A stretch of DNA of 64,000 nucleotides from Obrimoposthia wandeli (Eukaryota), in contig CDROCS010000506.1 of NCBI GenBank assembly GCA_977020255.1, positions 1,364,001-1,428,000 of the forward strand. The letters are read 5' to 3'. This document shows, piece by piece, positions 8,859 through 57,716 of the stretch. The position numbers and the translations under genes were made by a program. Within the stretch, counting starts at the first letter, position 1. Each line of letters opens with the position of its first letter. The notes beneath the pieces were generated by a model. It was not told the origin of the DNA. It did no database searches and saw only the letters and a program-made list of their open reading frames with translations.

Positions 8859-10076
8859 TTAGTTAACACTTAGCTTTAATGATATTAAATACACTCTAAA
8901 AATCATCGCAACATGAACAATTAAACTTAAAAAAGAAAACAAGATAATACCTAAATAAACATTGTTAAAATAACCGCCTACAGCATATGACAATATCGTT
9001 AGACTTAAAATCAAGATATTAAAATACAGCAACTCCTTTTGTTTTTCACCTATAACAAAAAGACTAAAGAATGGGGAGAATGATATTAAAGCAAACATGT
9101 AGGGTATTAGGCATTTTATTATATCTCCTGCTATTTTATATTCTTCACCAAACAAAAGCACTATAAAGAACTCAGAGAAAAAGTATGCAAGCACTGAAAT
9201 TACAAAGCCCATTATAATCGTTAATTTCAAATTTAAAAGTAAGTTATCTTTTGTTTTACTTCTATTATTGACAACGAGAGTAGTAAATAGCTGAGCTATC
9301 GTAGAAGAAAAAACTGAAATAGGACTTAATATTATCCTTAAACTAGCCCCATAAAACCCAGCCATTTCGCTAGAGTATAACTTTTCTATAATTATAGTTG
9401 GAGATCTAATAGTCAAAGAGTTAACCAGTTCTGCGACCATTTTCTGTAGAGGTAAATTCTTATACCTCTTTATGAACTGCCAGTGACCATTTAAGTTAAT
9501 GCTTTTAATTATAAAAAGTATACCTACGTTCCTTTGAATAAAGTACCAAAAGAAAAAGACAGATATAACAAAAAAACCATAGGCATTAATTTTGAGCATC
9601 ATTTCAGAGTTTAATAAATCATAAGTCGAATATAGAAAAAATATGGTCAGAGGGACTAAAAGCACAGCAAAACATTCCCAAATAGCAAGCTGTAATACCT
9701 TTTCATTAATTACAGCAAAGGTTCTGGCTAATACCTTAATCCCAGAAGAAAAAACAAAAATGCTAATCAATAGCGCATTATTTACTGATAAAATGGATAA
9801 AGAAAATAAAATGATTAAACTGGAAAGAAGAACATAAACCAGTACATTCCCGACAATAGAAGGACTATTATTTTTATCTTCATCAATATAAAGAGCTTGC
9901 TCATAAAATCCCGAACTCAAAATACTAATAACACCCGCGATGGATAAATAAACCATGTACTGACCGATTAGTTCAGGAGATACCACTTTAGTTACAAGAA
10001 GAAATCCAAGCATTGATAGCACTTGGGACAGGATATTGATAACTGTTATTGTGACTACATTGTTCAAAAAAAACAC
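8859..10076 (-). CDS. wzx: Oligosaccharide flippase
   Basis: About 12 hydrophobic segments, FIKRYKNLP and AGFYG motifs, polysaccharide-locus context. Confidence 0.82.
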   Translation of the reverse strand: MFFLNNVVTITVINILSQVLSMLGFLLVTKVVSPELIGQYMVYLSIAGVISILSSGFYEQALYIDEDKNNSPSIVGNVLVYVLLSSLIILFSLSILSVNNALLISIFVFSSGIKVLARTFAVINEKVLQLAIWECFAVLLVPLTIFFLYSTYDLLNSEMMLKINAYGFFVISVFFFWYFIQRNVGILFIIKSINLNGHWQFIKRYKNLPLQKMVAELVNSLTIRSPTIIIEKLYSSEMAGFYGASLRIILSPISVFSSTIAQLFTTLVVNNRSKTKDNLLLNLKLTIIMGFVISVLAYFFSEFFIVLLFGEEYKIAGDIIKCLIPYMFALISFSPFFSLFVIGEKQKELLYFNILILSLTILSYAVGGYFNNVYLGIILFSFLSLIVHVAMIFRVYLISLKLSVN

Positions 10077-25041: not shown

Positions 25042-25156
25042 GACCCCCTCCCAACCTCCCCCTAAAGTTAAGGGGAGGAGTAAGAGAAAAACCAAATGCA
25101 GTCTGCACTTGGTTTTAGTCCCCTCCCTTTTCTTAGGGGAGGGCTAGGGTGGGGTC
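25042..25156. repeat. Bipartite palindromic repeat doublet, copy 1 (A unit - linker - inverted B unit)
   Basis: GACCCCCTCCCAACCTCCCCCTAAAGTTAAGGGGAGGAG...CCCTCCCTTTTCTTAGGGGAGGGCTAGGGTGGGGTC; linker hairpin ACCAAATGCAGTCTGCACTTGGT. Confidence 0.92.
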
Positions 25157-25985: not shown

Positions 25986-26041
25986 GATCCCCTCCCAGCC
26001 TCTCCCTACTCTTTATTTATAAAAAGTAAAAAGGGGAGGAG
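25986..26041. repeat. Single A-type palindromic unit with enlarged loop (copy 2)
   Basis: GATCCCCTCCCAGCCTCTCCC-(TACTCTTTATTTATAAAAAGTAAAAA)-GGGGAGGAG, same ends as the A unit. Confidence 0.75.
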
Positions 26042-26091
26042 CAAGGCAAGGTCAAAACCTTACGCAGTCTTTGCTTCGGTCAAAATACATA

Positions 26092-27215: not shown

Positions 27216-27329
27216 GACCCCACCCTAGCCCTCCCCTTAAGTAAAGGGAGGGAACAAAGCCAAATGCATACTGCACTTATGTTAGTTCTTTCTCCTCCCC
27301 TTATTTTAGGGGGAGGCTGGGAGGGGGTC
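27216..27329. repeat. Bipartite palindromic repeat doublet, copy 3 (B - linker - inverted A)
   Basis: GACCCCACCCTAGCCCTCCCCTTAAGTAAAGGGAGGG...CCTCCCCTTATTTTAGGGGGAGGCTGGGAGGGGGTC; linker GCCAAATGCATACTGCACTT. Confidence 0.92.
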
Positions 27330-28879: not shown

Positions 28880-28987
28880 GACCCCCTCCCAACCTCCCCC
28901 TAAAGTTAAGGGGAGGAGCAAGAGAAAAGTAAAACGATCGCTGTTTAATCCCCTCCCTTTTCTTAAGGGGAGGGTTAGGGTGGGGTC
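28880..28987. repeat. Bipartite palindromic repeat doublet, copy 4 (A - linker - inverted B)
   Basis: GACCCCCTCCCAACCTCCCCCTAAAGTTAAGGGGAGGAG...CCCTCCCTTTTCTTAAGGGGAGGGTTAGGGTGGGGTC between convergent litR and ubiX. Confidence 0.92.
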
Positions 28988-31122: not shown

Positions 31123-31887
31123 TTACCCTTTTGAACGAAATTTATGATGTACGCGATTGATCGTCACACCGATAATGACACCAAACAGCAATAACAACAG
31201 AAACAATAATAAAATAGATTTAGTGGCATCAAACTGGAAAATAGTGAAGGTTTTCAGCATCTCTTGATAACTAAAATGCAGTTGTAAAAAGCCTACCGGT
31301 TTATTCTGTAATTCGCCCGCCAGTATCGGTTTTAAATATACCCGCACACCTGTTGGAGCCTCATACTTTTTGTTGGCGATGAGCTGCCCGACATAATCTT
31401 CATCTGAAGAACTTAATAACTTACCATTTTCAGAAAAAATATGCAGACCAGTCACATACTGATTTTCGCTTACCTCATCCACCAGCTGCTGTAACTGTTT
31501 TCTACTCTTAATTCGAGTGCTCTTATCTTCGGAATCACGTTCAACAATCAGATTAGCCGCCATTTTAGTCGGATAATCTAATAATGAATGTACCAACATA
31601 TCCACTTGATTATAACGAGACGCGGTTACATTGTTATACAACGAGATGGCAATAAAAATAAACAAGGTACACAGACTTAATGCGATCAGTAATGAGGTTT
31701 GCCCTTTTAGAAATCGACTCCGGCGCTTAGACTTACTGTCCTTACTGTCCTTACTGTCCTTACTGTCTTTACTGTCTTTACTGTCTTTACTGTCTTTACT
31801 GTCAAAAGCTTTGCTCGCCTGTTGAGTCGCTAAATGCGGTTCATGTGGCACAAGCTCTGAGTCTACAGGCTTGTCATTATTCTTCAT
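31123..31887 (-). CDS. AhpA/YtjB (Smp)-like membrane protein with N-terminal (DSK)8 repeat
   Basis: Two TM segments flanking a periplasmic domain; divergent from serB, as ytjB/smp is. Start set at Met17 of the ORF track. Confidence 0.55.
   Translation of the reverse strand: MKNNDKPVDSELVPHEPHLATQQASKAFDSKDSKDSKDSKDSKDSKDSKDSKSKRRSRFLKGQTSLLIALSLCTLFIFIAISLYNNVTASRYNQVDMLVHSLLDYPTKMAANLIVERDSEDKSTRIKSRKQLQQLVDEVSENQYVTGLHIFSENGKLLSSSDEDYVGQLIANKKYEAPTGVRVYLKPILAGELQNKPVGFLQLHFSYQEMLKTFTIFQFDATKSILLLFLLLLLFGVIIGVTINRVHHKFRSKG
31732..31803. repeat. 9-bp coding VNTR, 8 units
   Basis: (CTTACTGTC)x4 then (TTTACTGTC)x4; encodes DSK x8 on the minus strand. Confidence 0.97.
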
Positions 31888-35977: not shown

Positions 35978-37648
35978 TTAGCTAATACGTTTGTACTTAA
36001 TACGATGTGGTTGCGTCGCTTCTGCGCCTAAGGTTTTCTTCAACCAACCTTCGTAATCCGTGTAGTTACCTTCATAGAAGTTAACTTTACCTTCATCACG
36101 GTAATCCAGGATATGCGTCGCAATACGATCAAGGAACCAACGGTCATGAGAAATAACCATGGCACAACCAGGGAACTCTAGAATTGCTTCTTCAAGTGCA
36201 CGTAGTGTCTCGATATCCAAGTCATTGGTTGGCTCATCCAGTAGGATAACGTTGCCGCCAGACTGTAGTAATTTCGCAAGGTGTAAACGACCACGCTCAC
36301 CACCAGACAATTGACCAACACGTTTTTGCTGATCTGTGCCTTTGAAGTTAAAGCGGCTGCAATAAGCACGTGATGACATTTCAGTATTACCGACTTTGAT
36401 CGTATCTAAGCCGTCTGACAATTCTTGCCATACTGTGTTTTCGCCATTCATGTGATCACGGAACTGATCAACACTTGCTAACTGCACTGATGCACCAACT
36501 GAAACAGTACCTGAATCTGGAGACTCAGTACCATCTAGCATTTTGAATAGGGTTGATTTACCTGCACCATTGGGACCGATAATACCAACGATAGCGCCTT
36601 TTGGCATAGAGAATGATAGATCGTCAATTAATACACGACCGTCATACGCTTTACCTAGATGTTCAACGTCAATAACTTTGTCACCTAAACGCTCACCCGG
36701 TGGGATGAACAGTTCATTGGTTTCGTTACGACGTTGATAATCAGATTGGTTAAGCTCTTCAAAACGCGCCATACGTGCTTTGCTTTTCGCTTGACGACCT
36801 TTTGGATTTGAACGAACCCATTCAAGTTCTTTCTCAATCGATTTTTTACGTGCGCTTTCTTGCGACGATTCTTGCGCTAGACGCTCATCTTTCTGCTCTA
36901 ACCAAGAAGAGTAGTTACCTTCCCATGGAATACCTTCACCACGGTCAAGCTCTAAGATCCAACCGGCTACGTTATCAAGGAAATATCTATCATGCGTAAT
37001 CGCAACAACAGTACCTTCATAATCAAGTAGGAAACGTTCTAACCAAGCTACAGATTCAGCATCCAAATGGTTGGTTGGTTCATCTAGTAATAACATGTCT
37101 GGTTTTTCAAGTAACAGACGACAGATAGCAACACGACGACGTTCACCACCCGATAGGAGTTTAATTTTCTTGTCCCATTCAGGTAAACGTAATGCATCTG
37201 CAGCACGTTCTAGTTGGTTTTCGATGTTGTGACCATCGTGTGCTTGAATAATAGCTTCAAACTTTTCTTGTTTCTTCGCAAGCTTGTCAAAATCTGCATC
37301 CGGTTCAGCGTAATCAGCATAAACTTGATCAAGACCTGCCATTGCTTCTTTTAGTTCTGAAATGGCTTCTTCAACAACTTCACGTACTGTCTTTTCTAGA
37401 TCCAGTACTGGTTCTTGCGGTAAGTAACCAATTTTAGTGCCCGCTAATGGACGCGCTTCACCTTCGAAGTCTTTATCAACACCAGCCATGATACGTAGTA
37501 AGCTTGATTTACCAGAACCATTTAGACCCAGTACGCCAATCTTAGCACCAGGGTAAAAACTAAGTGAAATGTCTTTAAGAATTTGACGCTTCGGTGGCAC
37601 GATTTTGCCAACACGATGCATCGAATAGATAAACTGAGGACCAGCCAT
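35978..37648 (-). CDS. ettA: ABC-F energy-dependent translational throttle protein
   Basis: QFIYSMHRVGKIVPPKRQILKDISLSFYPGAKIG, two ABC domains, WLEQKDERL linker. Start set at ATG 37648. Confidence 0.97.
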   Translation of the reverse strand: MAGPQFIYSMHRVGKIVPPKRQILKDISLSFYPGAKIGVLGLNGSGKSSLLRIMAGVDKDFEGEARPLAGTKIGYLPQEPVLDLEKTVREVVEEAISELKEAMAGLDQVYADYAEPDADFDKLAKKQEKFEAIIQAHDGHNIENQLERAADALRLPEWDKKIKLLSGGERRRVAICRLLLEKPDMLLLDEPTNHLDAESVAWLERFLLDYEGTVVAITHDRYFLDNVAGWILELDRGEGIPWEGNYSSWLEQKDERLAQESSQESARKKSIEKELEWVRSNPKGRQAKSKARMARFEELNQSDYQRRNETNELFIPPGERLGDKVIDVEHLGKAYDGRVLIDDLSFSMPKGAIVGIIGPNGAGKSTLFKMLDGTESPDSGTVSVGASVQLASVDQFRDHMNGENTVWQELSDGLDTIKVGNTEMSSRAYCSRFNFKGTDQQKRVGQLSGGERGRLHLAKLLQSGGNVILLDEPTNDLDIETLRALEEAILEFPGCAMVISHDRWFLDRIATHILDYRDEGKVNFYEGNYTDYEGWLKKTLGAEATQPHRIKYKRIS

Positions 37649-37744
37649 TATGTTCTCTTTTCGCAAGGAATATGAATGTCGATAAGTGTAAACCTTGGCA
37701 GAGGTTGATACAAGGAAAAGAGCGAGCAGAACTAGACATAGAGC

Positions 37745-37881
37745 GACCCCACCCCAACCCTCCCCTCAAAAAAGGGAGGGAGCTAAAACAGCAACAAGCC
37801 AATTTGACCGCTACACTCAATTAGTAATGAAGTCTATCTCTGCTCCTCCCCTTAACTTTAGGGGGAGGCTGGGAGGGGGTC
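37745..37881. repeat. Bipartite palindromic repeat doublet, copy 5 (upstream of DUF559 gene)
   Basis: GACCCCACCCCAACCCTCCCCTCAAAAAAGGGAGGG...CCTCCCCTTAACTTTAGGGGGAGGCTGGGAGGGGGTC. Confidence 0.92.
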
Positions 37882-37918
37882 TGTCTAATCTTATTCGACC
37901 ATTACACGGAGGTAATAT

Positions 37919-38296
37919 TTGAGCACGAACATAAGAATCTACAATACCAACAAAAACACAAAATTACGCCAATCATTACGTTGCGATATGCCAGAAGCAG
38001 AGAAACAATTGTGGCAACGAATTCGTAAAAAACAGCTAGGGATGAAATTCCGTCGCCAACACGGTATCGGTAGATACATAGCGGATTTCTACTGTTCAGA
38101 ACATAAATTGGTTATCGAACTAGATGGTGATAGTCATGACTCTTTAGAAGCTCAGACTTATGATCAAGAAAGAAATATGTTCATGCAGGAAGTTGGGTTA
38201 GAGGTATTACGATTTACTAATAGAGAAGTGTTTAAAAATATTGAAGGTGTATTACAACAAATTGAAGATCAAGTAAAAAGAGCGACCCCACCCTAA
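37919..38296 (+). CDS. DUF559-family (Vsr-like) endonuclease-domain protein
   Basis: LR-x-x-M-x-x-AE-x-x-LW, FRRQHGIGRYIADF, VIELDGDSH, RN-x-FM-x-x-x-G-x-x-VLRF-x-N pattern; RBS GGAGGT just upstream of TTG start. Confidence 0.9.
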   Translation: MSTNIRIYNTNKNTKLRQSLRCDMPEAEKQLWQRIRKKQLGMKFRRQHGIGRYIADFYCSEHKLVIELDGDSHDSLEAQTYDQERNMFMQEVGLEVLRFTNREVFKNIEGVLQQIEDQVKRATPP

Positions 38297-38403
38297 CCCT
38301 CCCCTTCAAAAAGGGAGGGGACAGAGCCAAATGCAGACTGCACTTGTTTTCGTTCTTGCTCTTGCCCCTCCCCTTAACTTTAGGGGGAGGTTGGGAGGGG
38401 GTC
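38284..38403. repeat. Bipartite palindromic repeat doublet, copy 6 (overlaps DUF559 stop)
   Basis: GACCCCACCCTAACCCTCCCCTTCAAAAAGGGAGGGG-GCCAAATGCAGACTGCACTTG-CCTCCCCTTAACTTTAGGGGGAGGTTGGGAGGGGGTC; TAA at 38294-38296 lies inside the unit. Confidence 0.93.
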
Positions 38404-38435
38404 AGCTCTGCCCTAAGAGGGGTCTTTCTTAACTC

Positions 38436-39149
38436 TTAGTCTTTAATTAACACAGACTCTAATGCCATTACGATCATGTCATTGAACGTTAATTGACGTT
38501 CTTCTGCAGTCGTTACTTCACCCGTACGGATGTGATCAGATACAGTACAGATACAGATAGCATTTGCGCCGAATTCAGCTGCAACGCCGTATAGACCAGC
38601 CGCTTCCATTTCTACGCCTAGTACACCTAGTTTTTCCATCGTATCGAATAGTTCTGGTTTCGGTGTATAGAATAAATCTGCAGAGAAGATGTTACCTACT
38701 TTCGCATCGATACCACATGCTTTAGCAGCGCGTGTTACTTTGCTTAGTAGTTCCCATGATGCGATAGCAGCGAAATCATAACCGTCGAAACGTGCGCGGT
38801 TAACAGCTGAGTCTGTACATGCACCCATGCCGATCACAACGTCACGAACTTTAACGTCAGTGCTGATCGCGCCACAGCTACCAACACGGATAAGGTTTTT
38901 AACACCGTATTCAGTGATTAGCTCTTTTGCATAGATAGAACAAGATGGGATACCCATACCTGAACCCATTACAGAAACACGTGTACCTTTGTAAGTACCA
39001 GTGAAACCGAACATGTTACGCACGTCGTTCACTTGTTTAACGTCTTCTAAAAATGTTTCTGCGATGTATTTAGCGCGTAGCGGATCACCTGGGAATAGTA
39101 CCGTTTCAGCGAAATCACCTTGTTCTGCATTAATATGTGGAGTAGCCAT
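38436..39149 (-). CDS. deoD: Purine nucleoside phosphorylase
   Basis: [36 protein letters not shown]. Confidence 0.98.
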
Positions 39150-42869: not shown

Positions 42870-43073
42870 ATTAAGTCTCCAGATTATATTTAAAATATAG
42901 TGTTTAAAAAACCAATAGAAAAATCGCAGTAATTAAGATAATTACTACCGGTAGTTATTCTGGATGTGTATTAATAAAGAAGTGCTCACCTTAATATAAC
43001 TAAGGTAAATAAGTGACGTATAAATGATTAATGCTCATATTAAAATCAACGCTAATATAAACTTAATCTAACG

Positions 43074-43183
43074 ATCAACATAACTATCTTTAAGACAAAT
43101 ATCCATGAAGAATAACTATGCGGACTTGGTTCCGTGAAGACTTGATATGACTATCAATTAATATCCCTATAACCGCGTTAATA
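43074..43183. repeat. 110-bp conserved non-coding element, copy upstream of deoC
   Basis: 107/110 identical to 45040-45149; three ANGGA motifs on the minus strand. Confidence 0.9.
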
Positions 43184-43294
43184 CAACGAACCAGAGCTGT
43201 ATATTAAGCAAAAGCTTAAAGGCCAAAGGTCAGAAATATTTAACGAAAAACACCAAAAGTACTTCATGTGCAATTGGTTTAAACTACAGTGTTA

Positions 43295-43322
43295 AAGTTA
43301 CGCTAAGTGACAAAGAAATCAA
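43295..43322 (-). promoter_or_regulatory. Candidate sigma70 promoter, duplicated at about 45254-45278
   Basis: TTGATT-16 nt-TAACTT here and TTGATT-16 nt-TACCCT in the paralogous region, within a second conserved block (AACGAAAAACACCAAAAGTAC...). Confidence 0.35.
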
Positions 43323-43425
43323 GCAATAAATGCCGCTATAACGGTCGTACTTCTCACTATGTGCAATTAAACGACAATAAAACAACATATTAAATGTATG
43401 CCTATGTAAGCATGCTATTTAACTC

Positions 43426-43487
43426 AAAAATGCCCAACACTGCGATTAACATGGTCGATTAAACCTATCTACAAACAGTGTCGAGCA
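43426..43487 (-). terminator. Probable terminator after nupC (downstream copy)
   Basis: 12-bp stem UGCUCGACACUG/CAGUGUUGGGCA with G-U pairs, long loop, followed by U5. Confidence 0.45.
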
Positions 43488-43544
43488 ATACCTACTATCT
43501 TATGTCACGGCGACTACACCGCTACATCGCTAGCCCCTATATCA

Positions 43545-44768
43545 CTAACCTAAAAATAAACCAGCCAAGGTTGCACTCATTAAGTTAGCTAAAGAAGCCG
43601 CTAATACCGCTTTCATCCCCATGCTCGCAATGTCAGCACGACGTGATGGCGCTAAGCTACCTAAACCACCGAGCAAGATCGCAATAGATGAGAAGTTAGC
43701 AAAACCACACAGCGCGAAAGAAATAATGATTTGCGTATGCTCAGATAGCTCGTTATTTTTAATGTAGCTAACGAAATCGAGGAAAGCAACGAACTCATTC
43801 ACTACGAGTTTTTGACCAATGAAACTACCCGCAGCAACCGCTTCGTGCCACGGCACACCGATCACAAATGCCAATGGCGAGAACACCCAACCTAAGATCA
43901 TTTGAATGGTTAATTCAGGCATATCAAACCAAGCACCGATACCACCAGTGATACCATTTGCGAGAGCAATCAGACCAACGAATGCAATTAACATTGCACC
44001 TACGTTAAGCGCTAACATCATACCTGAAGACGCACCCGCAGCAGCTGCGTCAAGCACGTTAACCGGCTTGTCGTCATTGTCGTCGTCAAGATCATCCAGC
44101 GATATCTTTGGTGTTTCTGTTTCTGGCTTAATAATTTTAGCCATTAATAGGCCACCTGGCGCCGCCATGAATGACGCAGCAACCAAGTACTCAATCTTAA
44201 TACCAAGGCCAGCATAACCCGCAAGGACAGAACCAGCGATAGACGCAAGGCCACCAACCATCACCGCAAATAGCTCTGATTTAGTCATTGATTTAATGAA
44301 TGGACGCACAACAAGTGGCGCTTCAGTTTGACCCACAAAAATATTAGCAGTGGCAGAAAGTGATTCCGCACGACTGGTGCCTAATAATTTCTGTAAACCA
44401 CCACCGATGAAGTTAATCACCATGCTCATAATACCGAGGTAGTATAAAACTGCGATTAATGATGAGAAGAACACGATCACAGGCAATACGTTGATCGCGA
44501 AAATGAAGCCTACTTTGAATCTGGCTAAGTCACCAAATAAGAATTGAATACCTTCATTACCATAAGCAATGACGTTTGCTACGCCAGTAGAGAGACTTTG
44601 TAGTAACTCTTTACCCGGAGGGAAGTATAAAATGAACGCACCAATAATAACCTGAATAGCGAATGCGCCACCCACAGTGCGTAAGTTAATTGCTTTTCTG
44701 TTGTCCGATAATAGCAGCGCTAAACCGAGTAGCGCGAAAACGCCTACAATACCCATTACAAAATTCAT
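43545..44768 (-). CDS. nupC: NupC/CNT-family nucleoside:cation symporter (copy 1)
   Basis: [26 protein letters not shown]. Confidence 0.95.
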
Positions 44769-45039
44769 CAAGAATCGTCTCCAAATTTATTGGCTTTTTA
44801 TAAGCCAATGTTTATAAACCATTGATTAAATTTGTTATAAAACAATAATTCAATCACCGTAATTAACATTTTTATAGTTATGACTAAGCGTTAATTACTT
44901 GCGGTAGCTATTCTGGATAAATTCAAATAAAGAAATACCGACGCACCGTTGCAATCTAAGGTAAATAGATCACGTACGAAGATAAATAGATGACATATAA
45001 ATGACGAATACTTAGAGTAAAAGAAGCATTAATCTCACT

Positions 45040-45149
45040 ATCAACATAACTATCTTTAAGATAAATATCCATGAAGAATAACTATGCGGACTTGGTTCCT
45101 TGAAGACTTGATATGACTATCAATTAACATCCCTATAACCGCGTTAATA
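45040..45149. repeat. 110-bp conserved non-coding element, copy upstream of nupC copy 1
   Basis: 107/110 identical to 43074-43183. Confidence 0.9.
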
Positions 45150-45487
45150 GTACTTATCTAGCCACCTAAATTGAGGTTTAAAGAGTCCGTACTACTTAAC
45201 GAAAAACACCAAAAGTACATCATGTACAAACGGTCTTCATTACCTAGTTAAGGGTACGCTCAGTGACAAGTAAATCAAGTTGTAAATGTTCTCAGAACCG
45301 ACCCAGATCGCACTCCAAGAAAATAGATAAGCATAAAAAGCGAGATTAAATAAATATTAAATAAGGGGATGAGTAAATATTCTATTTTTTGTATTTGAGG
45401 CAATAACGATGCCGCGCATTACGCAGATAAAAATGCCAATAACGGCTCTAGTAATAACTCTAATAACAACAGTATTTTATCCAGATC

Positions 45488-45529
45488 AAAAAAATGCCCA
45501 CAAACTGCTTTTATACAATTTGTGGGCAT
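45488..45529 (-). terminator. Intrinsic terminator after nupC copy 2
   Basis: ATGCCCACAAA...TTTGTGGGCAT stem followed by T7 on the minus strand. Confidence 0.8.
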
Positions 45530-45590
45530 CATCTATTTTATAACCGTCATGATAACGGTTAATACATTATCGCTATTTTAGCTAAACATA

Positions 45591-46814
45591 TTAAGCTAGG
45601 AATAGACCCGCTAATGCAGCACTCATTAAGTTAGCTAGAGAAGCAGCAAGAACCGCTTTCATACCCATGCTTGCAATGTCTGCACGGCGTGTTGGTGCTA
45701 AGCTACCTAAACCACCTAATAGAATCGCAATAGATGAGAAGTTAGCAAAACCACATAACGCAAACGAGATGATGATTTGTGTATGCTCAGAAAGTTCGTT
45801 ATTTTTGATGTAGCTAACGAAGTCTAAGAAAGCAACAAATTCATTCACAACTAGTTTTTGACCAATGAAGCTACCAGCAGCAACCGCTTCGTGCCATGGC
45901 ACACCGATGACGAATGCAAGTGGTGAGAACACCCAACCTAAGATCATTTGGATCGTTAGTTCAGGCATATCGAACCAAGCACCGATACCACCAGTGATAC
46001 CATTTGCTAATGCGATTAGACCAACGAATGCAATTAACATTGCACCAACGTTAAGTGCTAGCATCATACCTGAAGAAGCACCCGCAGCAGCAGCATCTAG
46101 TACGTTTGCTGGTTTTTCTTCATCACTGTCGTCAAGATCATCAAGTGTAACTTTTGGCGTTTCAGTTTCAGGTTTAATGATTTTAGCCATTAATAGACCA
46201 CCCGGTGCAGCCATAAATGACGCAGCAACCAAGTACTCAATTTTAATACCAAGACCCGCATAACCAGCTAGAACTGAACCAGCGATAGACGCAAGACCAC
46301 CCACCATCACAGCAAATAGCTCTGATTTAGTCATTGATTTAATAAACGGACGCACAACAAGTGGTGCTTCAGTTTGACCAACAAAGATATTTGCAGTTGC
46401 AGAAAGTGATTCAGCACGACTAGTGCCTAATAGTTTCTGTAAGCCACCACCGATAAAGTTAATCACTACGCTCATTACACCGATATAGTATAAAACAGCG
46501 ATTAATGATGAGAAGAACACGATTACTGGCAATACGTTAATAGCAAAGATGAAACCAACTTTGAATTTCGCTAAATCACCAAATAAGAATTGAATACCTT
46601 CATTACCATAAGCAATGACGTTAGCAACACCAGTCGAAAGACCTTGTAGTAACTCTTTGCCTGGAGGGAAGTATAAAATAAACGCGCCAACAATAACCTG
46701 GATAGCAAAAGCGCCACCAACAGTGCGAAGGTTAATCGCTTTTCTGTTATCCGATAACAGTACAGCTAAACCAAGTAGAACGAAAACGCCTACAATACCC
46801 ATTACAAAATTCAT
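45591..46814 (-). CDS. nupC: NupC/CNT-family nucleoside:cation symporter (copy 2)
   Basis: Same motifs as copy 1; about 18 amino-acid differences over 407 aa by manual comparison. Confidence 0.95.
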
Positions 46815-55868: not shown

Positions 55869-57716
55869 TTAGTCACGACGTGGACGACGTGGACGACGTT
55901 CTTCGCCACCAGTTGATTCACGACGTTGACCACGATGACCGCGGTCAGCAGAAGGACGTTCGCCTTCACCAGATGGACGGCTACGTTCTTGACGACCTTC
56001 AGCTGCAACACCTTCAAGTTTGCTCATGCGTAATGCTTTGTTACAAACATAAACTTGTTGTAGTTGTTGTAACTGCTCGCTTGGCATACCTTTTGGTAAT
56101 TCAATTGTTGAGTAGTCATCATGTAGACGGATACCACCGATGTTACGGCTGTTGATATTCGCTTCATTAGCAATAGCGCCAACGATGTTCTTAACTTGAA
56201 CACCATCAGTACGACCAACTTCGATACGGAAAACTTCCATTTCAGCAGCTGGACGACGTTCGCCACGCTCAGAACGCTCACCACGTTCTGGACGGTCGCT
56301 ACGCTCACGGCGTTCGCCACGGTCGTTACGATCGCGACGTTCACCACGGTCTTCTACTTCACGGAAGCTACGTTCACGACGTGGTGCTTCAGGAGGTAGT
56401 ACTAATGGTTTTTCTTTCTGAGCCATAAATAATAACGCAGAAGCAAGGTCTAGTTCGCTAACTTCTAACTCTTCAGACAATTGTGCTGTTAAGTTTTTGT
56501 AGAAATCTAGGTTTTCGTCACCAGAAAGCATTTTAACAATGTCATCACGGAAAGATGCGATACGTTTTTTCGTAACATCATCACGTGAAGGTAGTTCCAT
56601 CATTGTTAATGGCTGACGTGTAGCACGTTCGATCGCTTTTAATAAACGACGTTCGCGTGGTGCTGCGAATAAAATTGCAGTACCTTTACGTCCAGCACGG
56701 CCTGTACGACCAATACGGTGAACGTATGATTCTGTATCAGTTGGGATATCGTAGTTGATTACTAAATCAATACGTGGAACATCAAGACCACGTGCAGCAA
56801 CATCTGTTGCGATAACGATATCTAACTGGCCACTCTTCAAACGGCTTACAGTGCGCTCACGCATTGCTTGGTTTAAATCACCGTTTAGTGCAGCTGCAGA
56901 ATAACCGCGAGCTTCTAATTTCTCAGCAAGTTCAACAGTCATTGTTTTAGTACGAGCAAAGATGATCACACCATCGTAGTCTTCAGTTTCAAGAATACGT
57001 GTTAGGCCGTCAAGTTTTGCTTGTAAACCACCAATGATTAGACATTTTTGTTCAATGTTTTCAACAGTTGATGTTTTAGTAGCAATTTTAACTGAAGTAG
57101 GTTCAGTCATAAAACGTTTAGTAATACGACGAATTTCTTCAGGCATAGTTGCTGAGAATAACGCCATTTGACGTTTTTCAGGTGTTTTAGACAGAATTGA
57201 TTCTACATCATCAATGAAGCCCATACGTAGCATTTCATCAGCTTCATCAAGTACTAATGCTTTAATACCAGAAAGATCAAGCGTACCACGGTTGATGTGA
57301 TCAATCACACGACCAGGTGTACCAACAATTACTTGTGGGTTACGTTTCAGTGCTTTTAACTGAATCGGGTAGCTTTGACCGCCGTAGATAGGTAGAACAT
57401 GGAATCCACGCATATGACGTGAGTATGCTTGGAATGCTTCAGCAACTTGAATCGCTAACTCACGAGTTGGTGCTAATACCAAAATCTGTGGTTTAGTCAG
57501 TGATGTATCAATGTTGCTCAATAATGGTAATGCAAACGCAGCTGTTTTACCCGTACCAGTCTGTGCCATACCTAGCACATCACCACCATTTTGTAGTAAT
57601 GGAATACATTCAGCTTGAATTGGTGAAGGTGTTTCATAACCTAGATCATTCAACGCTTTTAAGATTGGTTCAGGTAAGTTTAAATCAGTAAATTGTACGG
57701 GTGATGTATCAGACAT
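55869..57716 (-). CDS. deaD: DEAD-box RNA helicase DeaD/CsdA
   Basis: [29 protein letters not shown], DbpA RNA-binding domain, Arg/Glu-rich tail. Confidence 0.96.

Follow-up and report, generated by a model that had tools for sequence, protein, structure and literature searches.

A DUF559 nuclease gene paired with BoxC/PIT/TMECO triplex-motif repeats in Moritella and across bacterial phyla

Intergenic, multi-copy repeats known as BoxC, PIT elements or TMECO (Bachellier, 1990s; Hoyne and Maher, 2000; Holder et al., 2015, PMC4666352) are found in Proteobacteria and Cyanobacteria and share a C-stem, a loop, a G-stem, a 3-nt loop, and a second G-stem mirroring the first. The E. coli version forms a stable triplex in vitro, and its two types (second loop TTA versus another triplet) always combine in inverted pairs, although no stable triplex was found in vivo by DMS footprinting (PMC4666352). 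No mobility function, no transposase, and no consistent flanking gene was ever found for the motif (PMC4666352), and its origin has been unexplained for about 25 years. In the REP/REPIN-RAYT systems (Nunvar, 2010; Bertels and Rainey, 2011; Ton-Hoang, 2012), short palindromic repeats with a GTAG tag are dispersed as inverted doublets in intergenic DNA, and a usually single-copy, mostly vertically inherited HUH Y1 (IS200/IS605-like) transposase gene is bracketed by inverted units of the same repeat, the variants of which differ between lineages. REPINs decay after RAYT loss. DUF559 (PF04480) is a very large family with solved structures (e.g., PDB 3HRL from Neisseria) and no assigned function, and its relatives by fold include the repair nickase Vsr (PDB 1VSR/1CW0) and the EDxHD homing endonuclease I-Bth0305I (PDB 3R3P). 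One member, YcjD (b1289), is encoded by E. coli K-12, and its function is equally unknown. Here, we describe a DUF559 gene bracketed by triplex-motif repeats in a 64,000-nt stretch of DNA (the window; GCA_977020255.1, contig CDROCS010000506.1, positions 1,364,001 to 1,428,000, from an assembly filed under Obrimoposthia wandeli), which is Moritella DNA, and we compare its arrangement with these systems.

A DUF559 gene between two triplex-motif doublets

The arrangement reported in the preliminary description, a lone DUF559 gene between ettA and deoD flanked by same-orientation copies of a palindromic doublet, was confirmed. The ORF (37919-38296, plus strand; 125 aa) has a TTG start preceded at 5 nt by a Shine-Dalgarno-like GGAGGT (37908-37913), and an alternative ATG lies at 37989, but homologues align from residue 6-7 onward. 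The product matched the Pfam DUF559 profile over positions 3-108 of 109 (E = 5.1e-35; 120.1 bits against a curated cutoff of 20.6), and the only other Pfam matches were MTES_1575 and DUF2726. In the AlphaFold model (pLDDT, 82), the best Foldseek matches were 3HRL (E = 3e-6; TM, 0.89 on the target), the I-Bth0305I catalytic domain 3R3P (E = 4e-4), PvuRts1I, and Vsr (1VSR), indicating a Vsr-type fold, and the sequence itself matched 3HRL with an E value of 5e-28. The acidic and His residues E67, D69, H73, and D82 were invariant in 20 sequences. Endonuclease activity was not assayed, and no published activity for a stand-alone DUF559 protein was found. In contrast to I-Bth0305I and Vsr, the gene is free-standing, with no intron or intein host, no NUMOD or other DNA-binding module, and no partner cytosine methyltransferase, and its flanks are repeats rather than a split host gene.

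The upstream doublet (37745-37881, plus strand) consists of a left unit (37745-37780; C-tail, TAA linker, and hairpin; TMECO type-A-like), a linker, and a right unit (37845-37881; hairpin, CTG, and G-tail; type-B-like), the G-tail of which ends 37 nt before the DUF559 start. The downstream doublet (38284-38403, plus strand; left unit 38284-38319, right unit 38367-38403) has the same orientation, and its left unit encodes the last residues (ATPP) and the stop codon of the ORF. The left units, compared at 37740-37780 and 38279-38319, are 93% identical, and the right units, compared at 37841-37881 and 38363-38403, are 95% identical. A short remnant repeating the end of the G-tail (…GAGGGGTC) follows the downstream doublet at 38404-38424 (plus strand) and is absent from the M. 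marina alleles. A 20-nt pattern for the unit gave 12 overlapping matches (11 units) in the window, against none in 100 dinucleotide shuffles, in agreement with the 11 units counted previously. Besides the two flanking doublets, these comprise solo doublets at 25042-25156 (minus strand; in an intergenic gap), 27216-27329 (plus strand; in an intergenic gap), and 28880-28987 (minus strand; between convergent genes), together with a single decayed unit at 25986-26045 (plus strand) with a long loop and no partner. Repeats fill four consecutive intergenic gaps at 25-29 kb. The linker of the downstream doublet belongs to the same subfamily as that of the solo doublet at 27 kb. Look-ups of the exact proteins of genes at 27-29 kb found nothing.

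The five doublets could be aligned in register, and each is an inverted pair of two different unit types, one with a TAA/TTA loop and one with a CTG/TTG loop, as the earlier B-linker-A reading held and as stated for E. coli (PMC4666352). The earlier resemblance to BoxC was likewise correct, but the unit is not a plain hairpin: its G- or C-rich tail, joined to the hairpin by a 3-nt linker, is the mirror image of the hairpin arm, so that a single strand could fold into a three-stranded helix. Across lineages, the tail mirrors arm 1 in 135 of 168 locus-distinct units (shuffle mean, 40.6; maximum, 59 in 10,000 shuffles), and six arm classes each pair with their own mirrored tail. All 10 intact units in the window passed a triplex-motif detector that gave no hits in block-shuffled DNA. 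The exact TMECO pattern, CCCTCNCCC-N3-6-GGGNGAGGG-N3-GGGNGAGGG, is absent from the Moritella units, whose stems are 8 nt (GGGGAGGG or GGGGGAGG) without the GAG core rather than the 9-nt GGGNGAGGG of E. coli, and whose type-B loop is CTG/TTG rather than CCG; the doublets also carry a further conserved TAGAGC-like extension at both ends. The repeat is therefore a sequence variant of the described class. Triplex formation was not measured, and ViennaRNA, which has no triplex terms, predicted only hairpins and a long imperfect hairpin for the doublet. A G-quadruplex as the selected structure is weakened by widespread variants with C-runs of 5,1,1,5, which cannot form a quadruplex within one unit but keep perfect mirror symmetry, and Holder et al. 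also excluded a quadruplex for TMECO. An integron cassette (attC) reading was rejected, since the units begin with GACCCC and end with GGGGTC without a GTTRRRY core, and the neighbours are ettA and deoD, with no integrase. A search of the whole window against Rfam at gathering thresholds gave no match. An nhmmer profile of the ten window units was too loose and was replaced by structural detectors, and a covariance model was not built, because MAFFT mis-aligned the 3′ arm where loop lengths vary.

Association of DUF559 genes with the motif across bacteria

Enrichment of the motif in the flanks of DUF559 genes across bacteria had been proposed in advance as a test of the partnership, and the outcome was favourable. 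Among 80 loci chosen by two peptide motifs only and examined with the same triplex-motif detector, 52 of 76 have a G-oriented unit ending within 150 nt upstream of the gene (median, 33 nt), 44 of 75 have a C-oriented unit at the stop codon (median, +1 nt), and 66 of 80 have at least one of the two, with both sides detected in 30; the background of 0.094 units per kb gives 0.007 expected per side. The loci come from Gammaproteobacteria, Cyanobacteria, Patescibacteria, Planctomycetota, Nitrospirota, Nitrospinota, Bdellovibrionota, and Geobacteraceae, although they sample one DUF559 clade (43-66% identity to the query) rather than the whole family. Units more than 600 bp from the gene occur at 34 of 72 loci, with 114 C-G doublets in all. 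The bracketing of the gene by inverted units and the dispersal of inverted doublets in intergenic DNA are thus shared with the REP/REPIN-RAYT systems, whereas the enzyme here is not an HUH Y1 transposase and the DNA element is a mirror-repeat triplex motif. The protein tree could not be labelled by arm class, because the 7-mer labels were out of register, and no co-evolution claim is made. Plasmids and phages rarely carry close relatives (50 of 72,556 and 5 of 50,697 records, respectively), and they are thus not the obvious vehicles.

The same geometry, found with the published TMECO pattern, occurs in Enterobacter asburiae, and it is decayed at E. coli ycjD and GA-rich at the Neisseria gene of PDB 3HRL; the exact pattern is present next to DUF559 in E. 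asburiae and E. coli. YcjD is 41% identical to the window protein, and the ycjD stop codon lies in a decayed C-unit with a TMECO unit about 170 nt downstream, but there is no upstream unit. The gene is a dispensable cassette that alternates with eefRABCD at a fixed site, and the ycjD region is present in 3375 of 5426 complete E. coli genomes. A correlation between repeat count and gene presence had also been named as a test, and published TMECO counts follow ycjD: 13-30 in phylogroups A/B1/C, which carry it, against 1-2 in B2, 10-11 in E, 13 in D, and 6-7 in F, which carry eefRABCD instead. This comparison is confounded by phylogeny and rests on very few independent evolutionary events, and phylogroups D, E, and F keep 6-13 TMECOs without ycjD. 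Salmonella and Klebsiella aerogenes are TMECO-poor. In the literature searched (DUF559, COG2852, ycjD, BoxC, TMECO, and intrastrand triplexes), which did not extend to subscription journals, no paper linked the protein, or any other gene, to the repeat; the repeat class is already described, and it is the link to DUF559 that appears new.

Allelic variation and selection in Moritella

A check of relatives for a gene-less ettA-deoD site holding one doublet had been proposed as a further test, and such a site was found: among close Moritella relatives with identical DeoD protein, the site has no repeat, one doublet (the M. marina ATCC 15381 allele), or doublet-gene-doublet. Two M. marina genomes with identical EttA protein differ in whether they carry the gene, and repeat arrays next to the gene are amplified in M. 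marina (4 left halves and 5 right halves). However, the solo doublet at 28880-28987 is conserved at the orthologous site in two M. marina genomes, including one without the DUF559 gene at ettA-deoD; solo doublets are old, and no recent transposition is therefore visible in Moritella. The gene is under purifying selection (dN/dS, 0.10), but its dS of 0.86 is 3-10 times that of the neighbouring genes (0.09-0.32). Synteny is maintained in Moritella lineages, Nitrospira, Oceanimonas, and Pseudanabaena, whereas presence/absence variation within M. marina, paralogues within some genomes, and the inflated dS point the other way, so that single-copy, vertical inheritance as in RAYT was neither upheld nor contradicted by these data. 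With respect to a homing endonuclease gene, alleles without the gene and with one doublet or no repeat exist, but cleavage was not examined, leaving this assignment undecided; the paralogous copies at different loci within one genome (our loci L054/L068 and L021/L030) bear on the same question.

Possible roles of DUF559 at the repeats

The earlier proposal of a REP/RAYT-like system, in which the nuclease recognises and nicks the hairpins and spreads or maintains the repeat family, is partly supported by our analysis. In our preferred model, held at about even confidence, the DUF559 protein is the dedicated partner nuclease of the motif, its gene sitting between two inverted units with their tails facing it in a compact module that recurs across phyla. 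The Vsr-fold nuclease would recognise the folded or extruded unit, or the mismatched type-A/type-B stem that a doublet forms in single-stranded DNA, and would nick next to that structure, and recombinational repair would then copy, convert, amplify, or delete repeat units and the gene cassette itself. This would maintain the repeat family much as RAYT maintains REPINs, but with PD-(D/E)XK hydrolytic chemistry followed by host repair instead of covalent HUH/tyrosine chemistry, and the direct doublets flanking the gene would also make it easy to lose, and to regain, by recombination. Our data establish the repeat anatomy and mirror covariation, the cross-phylum association with fixed geometry, the allelic states, purifying selection, and an intact nuclease fold, whereas binding, nicking, and any role in spreading the repeats are inferred. 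There is no biochemical or genetic evidence that any DUF559 protein acts on this motif, and the protein is only a catalytic domain without an obvious specificity module. Whole genomes were not scanned, so a second enzyme elsewhere, such as a RAYT, is not excluded. A bolder possibility, which we consider slightly less likely than not, is that stand-alone DUF559 proteins, including YcjD and the protein of 3HRL, are the long-missing enzymes that generate, maintain, or move BoxC/PIT/TMECO repeats, a second REP/RAYT-like partnership mechanistically unrelated to the first, in which a Vsr-fold nickase reads a three-stranded DNA fold and the module has spread between bacterial phyla.

A rival reading that fits most of the same data, although we regard it as doubtful, is that DUF559 is a selfish, homing-type gene using the doublets only as landing pads and homology arms, cutting a solo doublet or a tail-to-tail junction and being copied in by repair without any part in creating or spreading the repeats. 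In its favour, the nearest characterised structural relative is the catalytic domain of a homing endonuclease, gene-less alleles with one doublet exist within a single species, paralogous copies occur as described above, and the elevated dS is expected if the cassette is repeatedly replaced from divergent donors. In E. coli, the ycjD cassette replaced eefRABCD, and did so again in ST69 and ST182 (PMC12817139), and a duplicated 3′ end of ycjD lies downstream of the gene in K-12. However, the usually single-copy gene keeps one chromosomal position over deep divergence (Moritella lineages down to 62% protein identity, Nitrospira, and Oceanimonas), only the two inner units are present in Patescibacteria and Nitrospira, with no outer partners that would mark a split doublet, and the protein lacks an extra DNA-binding domain such as NUMOD. 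This reading also does not explain why genomes and lineages with the gene hold more repeats.

It is unlikely that DUF559 is a host-serving, structure-specific repair nuclease that removes or processes triplex or hairpin structures stalling replication, with the flanking units hitch-hiking with the gene or autoregulating it. Vsr, the founding member of the family, is a repair nickase, the gene shows strong purifying selection and appears vertically inherited at fixed loci in several genera, and triplex motifs are linked to local genomic instability and block polymerases in vitro (PMC4666352). Nevertheless, a trans-acting repair enzyme has no need for its own gene to be bracketed by its substrates in one fixed geometry across phyla, the gene is dispensable within a species while the repeats stay, and the patchy distribution and the mixing of phyla in the protein tree point to module transfer rather than a housekeeping role. 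That the adjacency has no functional meaning, the repeats being spread by another enzyme (e.g., a RAYT-type Y1 transposase elsewhere) or by replication slippage and accumulating in permissive gaps or serving DUF559 as terminators or regulatory RNA, is very unlikely, because, although the units are hairpins placed at gene ends and fill many intergenic gaps, the correctly oriented motif at 66 of 80 independent loci, the involvement of the same gene family in small-genome Patescibacteria, Cyanobacteria, and Enterobacteria, the absence of an Rfam match, and the lack of promoter or terminator activity of PIT elements and of a nearby transposase in earlier experiments (PMC4666352) all speak against it.

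Collectively, a specific, cross-phylum pairing of DUF559 with a repeat known since the 1990s offers a candidate function for the protein and a candidate origin for the repeat, and it is directly testable in E. coli K-12, with ycjD and its 23 TMECO sites. It would be a natural case of a nuclease tied to a non-B DNA structure, and it would give REPIN-RAYT biology an independent second example with different chemistry.

The DUF559 locus and the triplex-motif repeat in Moritella

The region comprises ettA (35978-37666, minus strand), a 125-aa ORF at 37919-38296 (plus strand), and deoD (38436-39149, minus strand). The ORF matched the Pfam family DUF559 with an E-value of 5e-35, and its closest relative was a Moritella marina protein at 83% identity, indicating that the window is Moritella DNA. 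The ORF is flanked by two elements of 137 and 120 bp (37745-37881 and 38284-38403) lying in the same orientation, whose left ends are 93% identical to each other and whose right ends are 95% identical. A 20-nt unit pattern gave 12 overlapping matches in the window, compared with 0 in shuffled sequences. These resolved into five full elements and one decayed unit, and four of these loci fill consecutive intergenic gaps at 25-29 kb. The stop codon of the ORF lies inside the left unit of the downstream element. The preliminary description of a DUF559 gene bracketed by direct copies of a palindromic repeat doublet was accurate. Other repeats in the window were a perfect tandem duplication of 82 bp at 2428-2591, two runs with a 9-nt period at 31723-31803 and 55893-56360 (CTTACTGTC in about nine copies and a degenerate ACGNCGTTC-like run, respectively), both probably in-frame coding repeats, and a segmental duplication at 43063-45891 in the nupC/deoC area with a 2046-bp (and nearby 1966-bp) offset, including a 121-nt stretch at 96% identity and a 300-nt stretch at 85%.

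Each element is an inverted pair of two related but distinct units. Written on the C-rich strand, a unit consists of a tail, a 3-nt linker, arm 1, a loop, and arm 2, in which the tail is the mirror image of arm 1 rather than its complement. When the interrupting T shifts within arm 1 between lineages, the interrupting T or A in the tail shifts with it. Across 168 locus-distinct units, 135 were mirrored, whereas shuffling the tails among units gave a mean of 40.6 and never more than 59 in 10,000 trials. Relatedness inflates such counts, but the class-by-class match, in which six arm classes each carry their own mirrored tail, does not depend on it. Mirror symmetry next to a hairpin is the signature of an intrastrand triple helix, and variants with C-runs of 5,1,1,5 retain this symmetry although they cannot form a quadruplex within one unit.

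The motif belongs to a known class, BoxC, later named PIT element and then TMECO (Holder et al. 2015, PMC4666352). The E. coli consensus has the same block structure, occurs as a TTA-loop type and a second type that are always combined in inverted pairs, and forms a stable triplex in vitro according to CD and NMR. The Moritella units are a sequence variant with 8-nt stems and TAA/TTA and CTG/TTG loops. The authors of that study stated that they found no consistent flanking gene and never any transposase or integrase, and they summarized earlier work by Maher's group as having found no promoter or terminator activity; DUF559 is not mentioned. The repeat class and the protein family are both known, whereas we did not find their pairing in any searchable paper, in a search that excluded most subscription journals and so does not rule out a prior description, and the key repeat paper explicitly reports the absence of such a partner.

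Association of the triplex motif with DUF559 genes across bacteria

An alignment of homologues showed that many end in TPP, NPL, or PPP, and one Cellvibrio protein reads through into NPLPTSP, a translation of the repeat itself. Whether DUF559 genes are enriched for such repeats in their flanks had been proposed at the outset as a test of the pairing, and we examined it in 80 loci from one genome per species, selected by two peptide motifs inside the protein, independently of the flanks. In most loci, a hairpin followed by a G-tail ends shortly before the start codon, and a C-tail followed by a hairpin sits at or over the stop codon. Using a detector that requires the full triplex architecture and finds nothing in block-shuffled DNA, 52 of 76 evaluable loci had the upstream unit (median distance, 33 nt) and 44 of 75 had the downstream unit (median, +1 nt from the stop); 30 loci had both, and 66 of 80 had at least one, compared with a background of 0.094 units per kb, or about 0.007 expected per side. 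Several of the 14 negative loci showed decayed units by eye. The loci span Gammaproteobacteria, Cyanobacteria, several Patescibacteria lineages, Planctomycetota, Nitrospirota, Nitrospinota, Bdellovibrionota, and Geobacteraceae. In 34 of 72 loci, further units lie more than 600 bp from the gene, mostly as inverted doublets.

Variation was also evident among the fetched loci (L numbers). In Aliivibrio (L003, L005, L007, L008, and L011), the triplex units have unusually long hairpin loops of about 40 nt and form regular arrays with about 50-nt tail-to-tail spacers. One DUF559 clade sits inside type I restriction-modification operons (L010, L016, L024, L004, L044, L028, L041, L049, L062, L073, and L081, around position 10000 or the match), where it follows an hsdS-like C-terminus (…LLTGKRRV or …YYRDLLLSFP, sometimes itself ending inside a repeat unit) and precedes an hsdR-like N-terminus; in the protein tree, a starred clade joins Cyanobacteria with Acinetobacter and Moraxellaceae. 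At L059:10001-11086 and L020:10001-10660, the DUF559 reading frame runs on well beyond its usual end, which may reflect a fusion with, or read-through into, the downstream restriction-modification gene. A contig labelled as a Borreliella garinii MAG (L048) is nearly identical, in gene and repeats, to a Thiothrix locus (L046) and is probably mis-binned.

The pattern also holds in the organisms where the motif was first defined. In Enterobacter asburiae, the stop codon of the DUF559 gene lies in the loop of a type-B TMECO unit, which is followed at once by an inverted type-A unit, and both match the pattern of Holder et al. E. coli K-12 YcjD, 41% identical to the window protein, ends in a decayed unit and has a TMECO about 170 nt downstream. 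Between ycjD and fabI (L084:8290-8480), about 45 nt of the 3′ end of ycjD is repeated roughly 100 nt downstream and is followed by a decayed triplex-like stretch, resembling the remnant of a second cassette end. The Neisseria gonorrhoeae gene whose product is PDB 3HRL (L099:1330-2050) lies between direct repeats of about 100 bp, each holding a GA-rich mirror unit (CCCTCTCCC, loop, GGGAGAGAG, 3 nt, GAGAGAGGG); this record is filed as a plasmid in PLSDB but is 2.17 Mb long, which is chromosome size.

Allelic dynamics and repeat abundance

A check of relatives for an empty ettA-deoD site holding one doublet had been proposed at the outset, and a look-up of the window's DeoD protein returned close relatives with three alleles at ettA-deoD: a site with no repeat and a bidirectional terminator; a site with exactly one doublet and no gene (M. 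marina ATCC 15381); and the doublet-gene-doublet form (the window, a M. marina MAG, and two deeper lineages). The one-doublet allele equals the full allele minus the gene and one doublet, which is what recombination between the direct right-hand units would leave. The M. marina strain and the M. marina MAG have identical EttA protein, indicating a polymorphism within a species. In the MAG, the doublet upstream of DUF559 (L001:5309-5973) has expanded into four tandem left halves (unit plus linker, about 91-104 bp period) followed by five tandem right halves (57 bp period), suggesting local amplification of half-elements next to the gene. Between the window and the MAG, DUF559 has a dN of 0.084 and a dS of 0.86, whereas the dS of its neighbours is 0.089 for deoD, 0.18 for deoB, and 0.32 for ettA. 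The protein is therefore under purifying selection, but the cassette is much older than its surroundings, as expected if alleles are exchanged by recombination. By contrast, the solo doublet at 28880-28987 sits at the same site in both M. marina genomes; solo copies are thus old and outlast loss of the local gene. The ATCC 15381 genome (L092:20068-20897) also carries a HigB-toxin-like gene and a 149-aa partner between the Mur-ligase-family gene and the flavoprotein gene, both absent at that site in the MAG (L093) and in the window. Elsewhere, the DUF559 gene is syntenic within Nitrospira, Oceanimonas, and Pseudanabaena, and some genomes hold diverged paralogues at separate loci, each with its own units.

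Correlation of repeat count with gene presence was a further test proposed in advance, and it was examined with the TMECO counts for 56 E. coli genomes in Table S7 of Holder et al. A 2026 survey shows that ycjD occupies the fabI-sapF site in phylogroups A, B1, and C, plus ST69 and ST182, whereas phylogroups B2, D, E, F, and G carry eefRABCD there instead (PMC12817139). We confirmed that 3375 of 5426 complete genomes hold the ycjD region and that O157:H7 does not. With strains assigned to phylogroups by us, the ycjD lineages (A, B1, and C) have 13-30 TMECOs, compared with 1-2 in B2, 10-11 in E, 13 in D, and 6-7 in F. This fits the hypothesis, although it rests on very few independent events. 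YcjD homologues are common in Enterobacter asburiae and E. cloacae, which are TMECO-rich, whereas no Salmonella name appeared among the top 120 hits, and Salmonella is TMECO-free according to Holder et al.; the named fraction of that list is small, so this is only a hint.

Predicted nuclease fold and interpretation of the proposed partnership

The AlphaFold model of the protein (pLDDT 82) matched 3HRL, the catalytic domain of the homing endonuclease I-Bth0305I, PvuRts1I, and Vsr, while a sequence search of solved structures found only 3HRL. E67, D69, H73, and D82 are invariant in the alignment, and there is no additional DNA-binding domain.

Our data establish the association between the gene and the motif, its geometry, and its breadth, whereas action of the nuclease on the motif is our inference. 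The preliminary interpretation, in which the nuclease nicks these hairpins as the partner of the repeat family in a REP/RAYT-like system, is therefore supported only in part. The main rival is a homing-type selfish gene that merely exploits doublets, and the dS excess, the gene-less alleles, and the E. coli cassette replacements fit that reading equally well; the two readings are not exclusive. We favour a REP/RAYT-like partnership, in which nicking at a folded or extruded unit would drive repair-mediated copying, conversion, amplification, and deletion of units and of the cassette. A type-A/type-B doublet folded as a single strand forms a long stem (-32 kcal/mol, z -4) that, by base-by-base reading, carries fixed T:G and other mismatches. 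T:G is the lesion that Vsr recognises, and this could, speculatively, explain why the two types are always paired.
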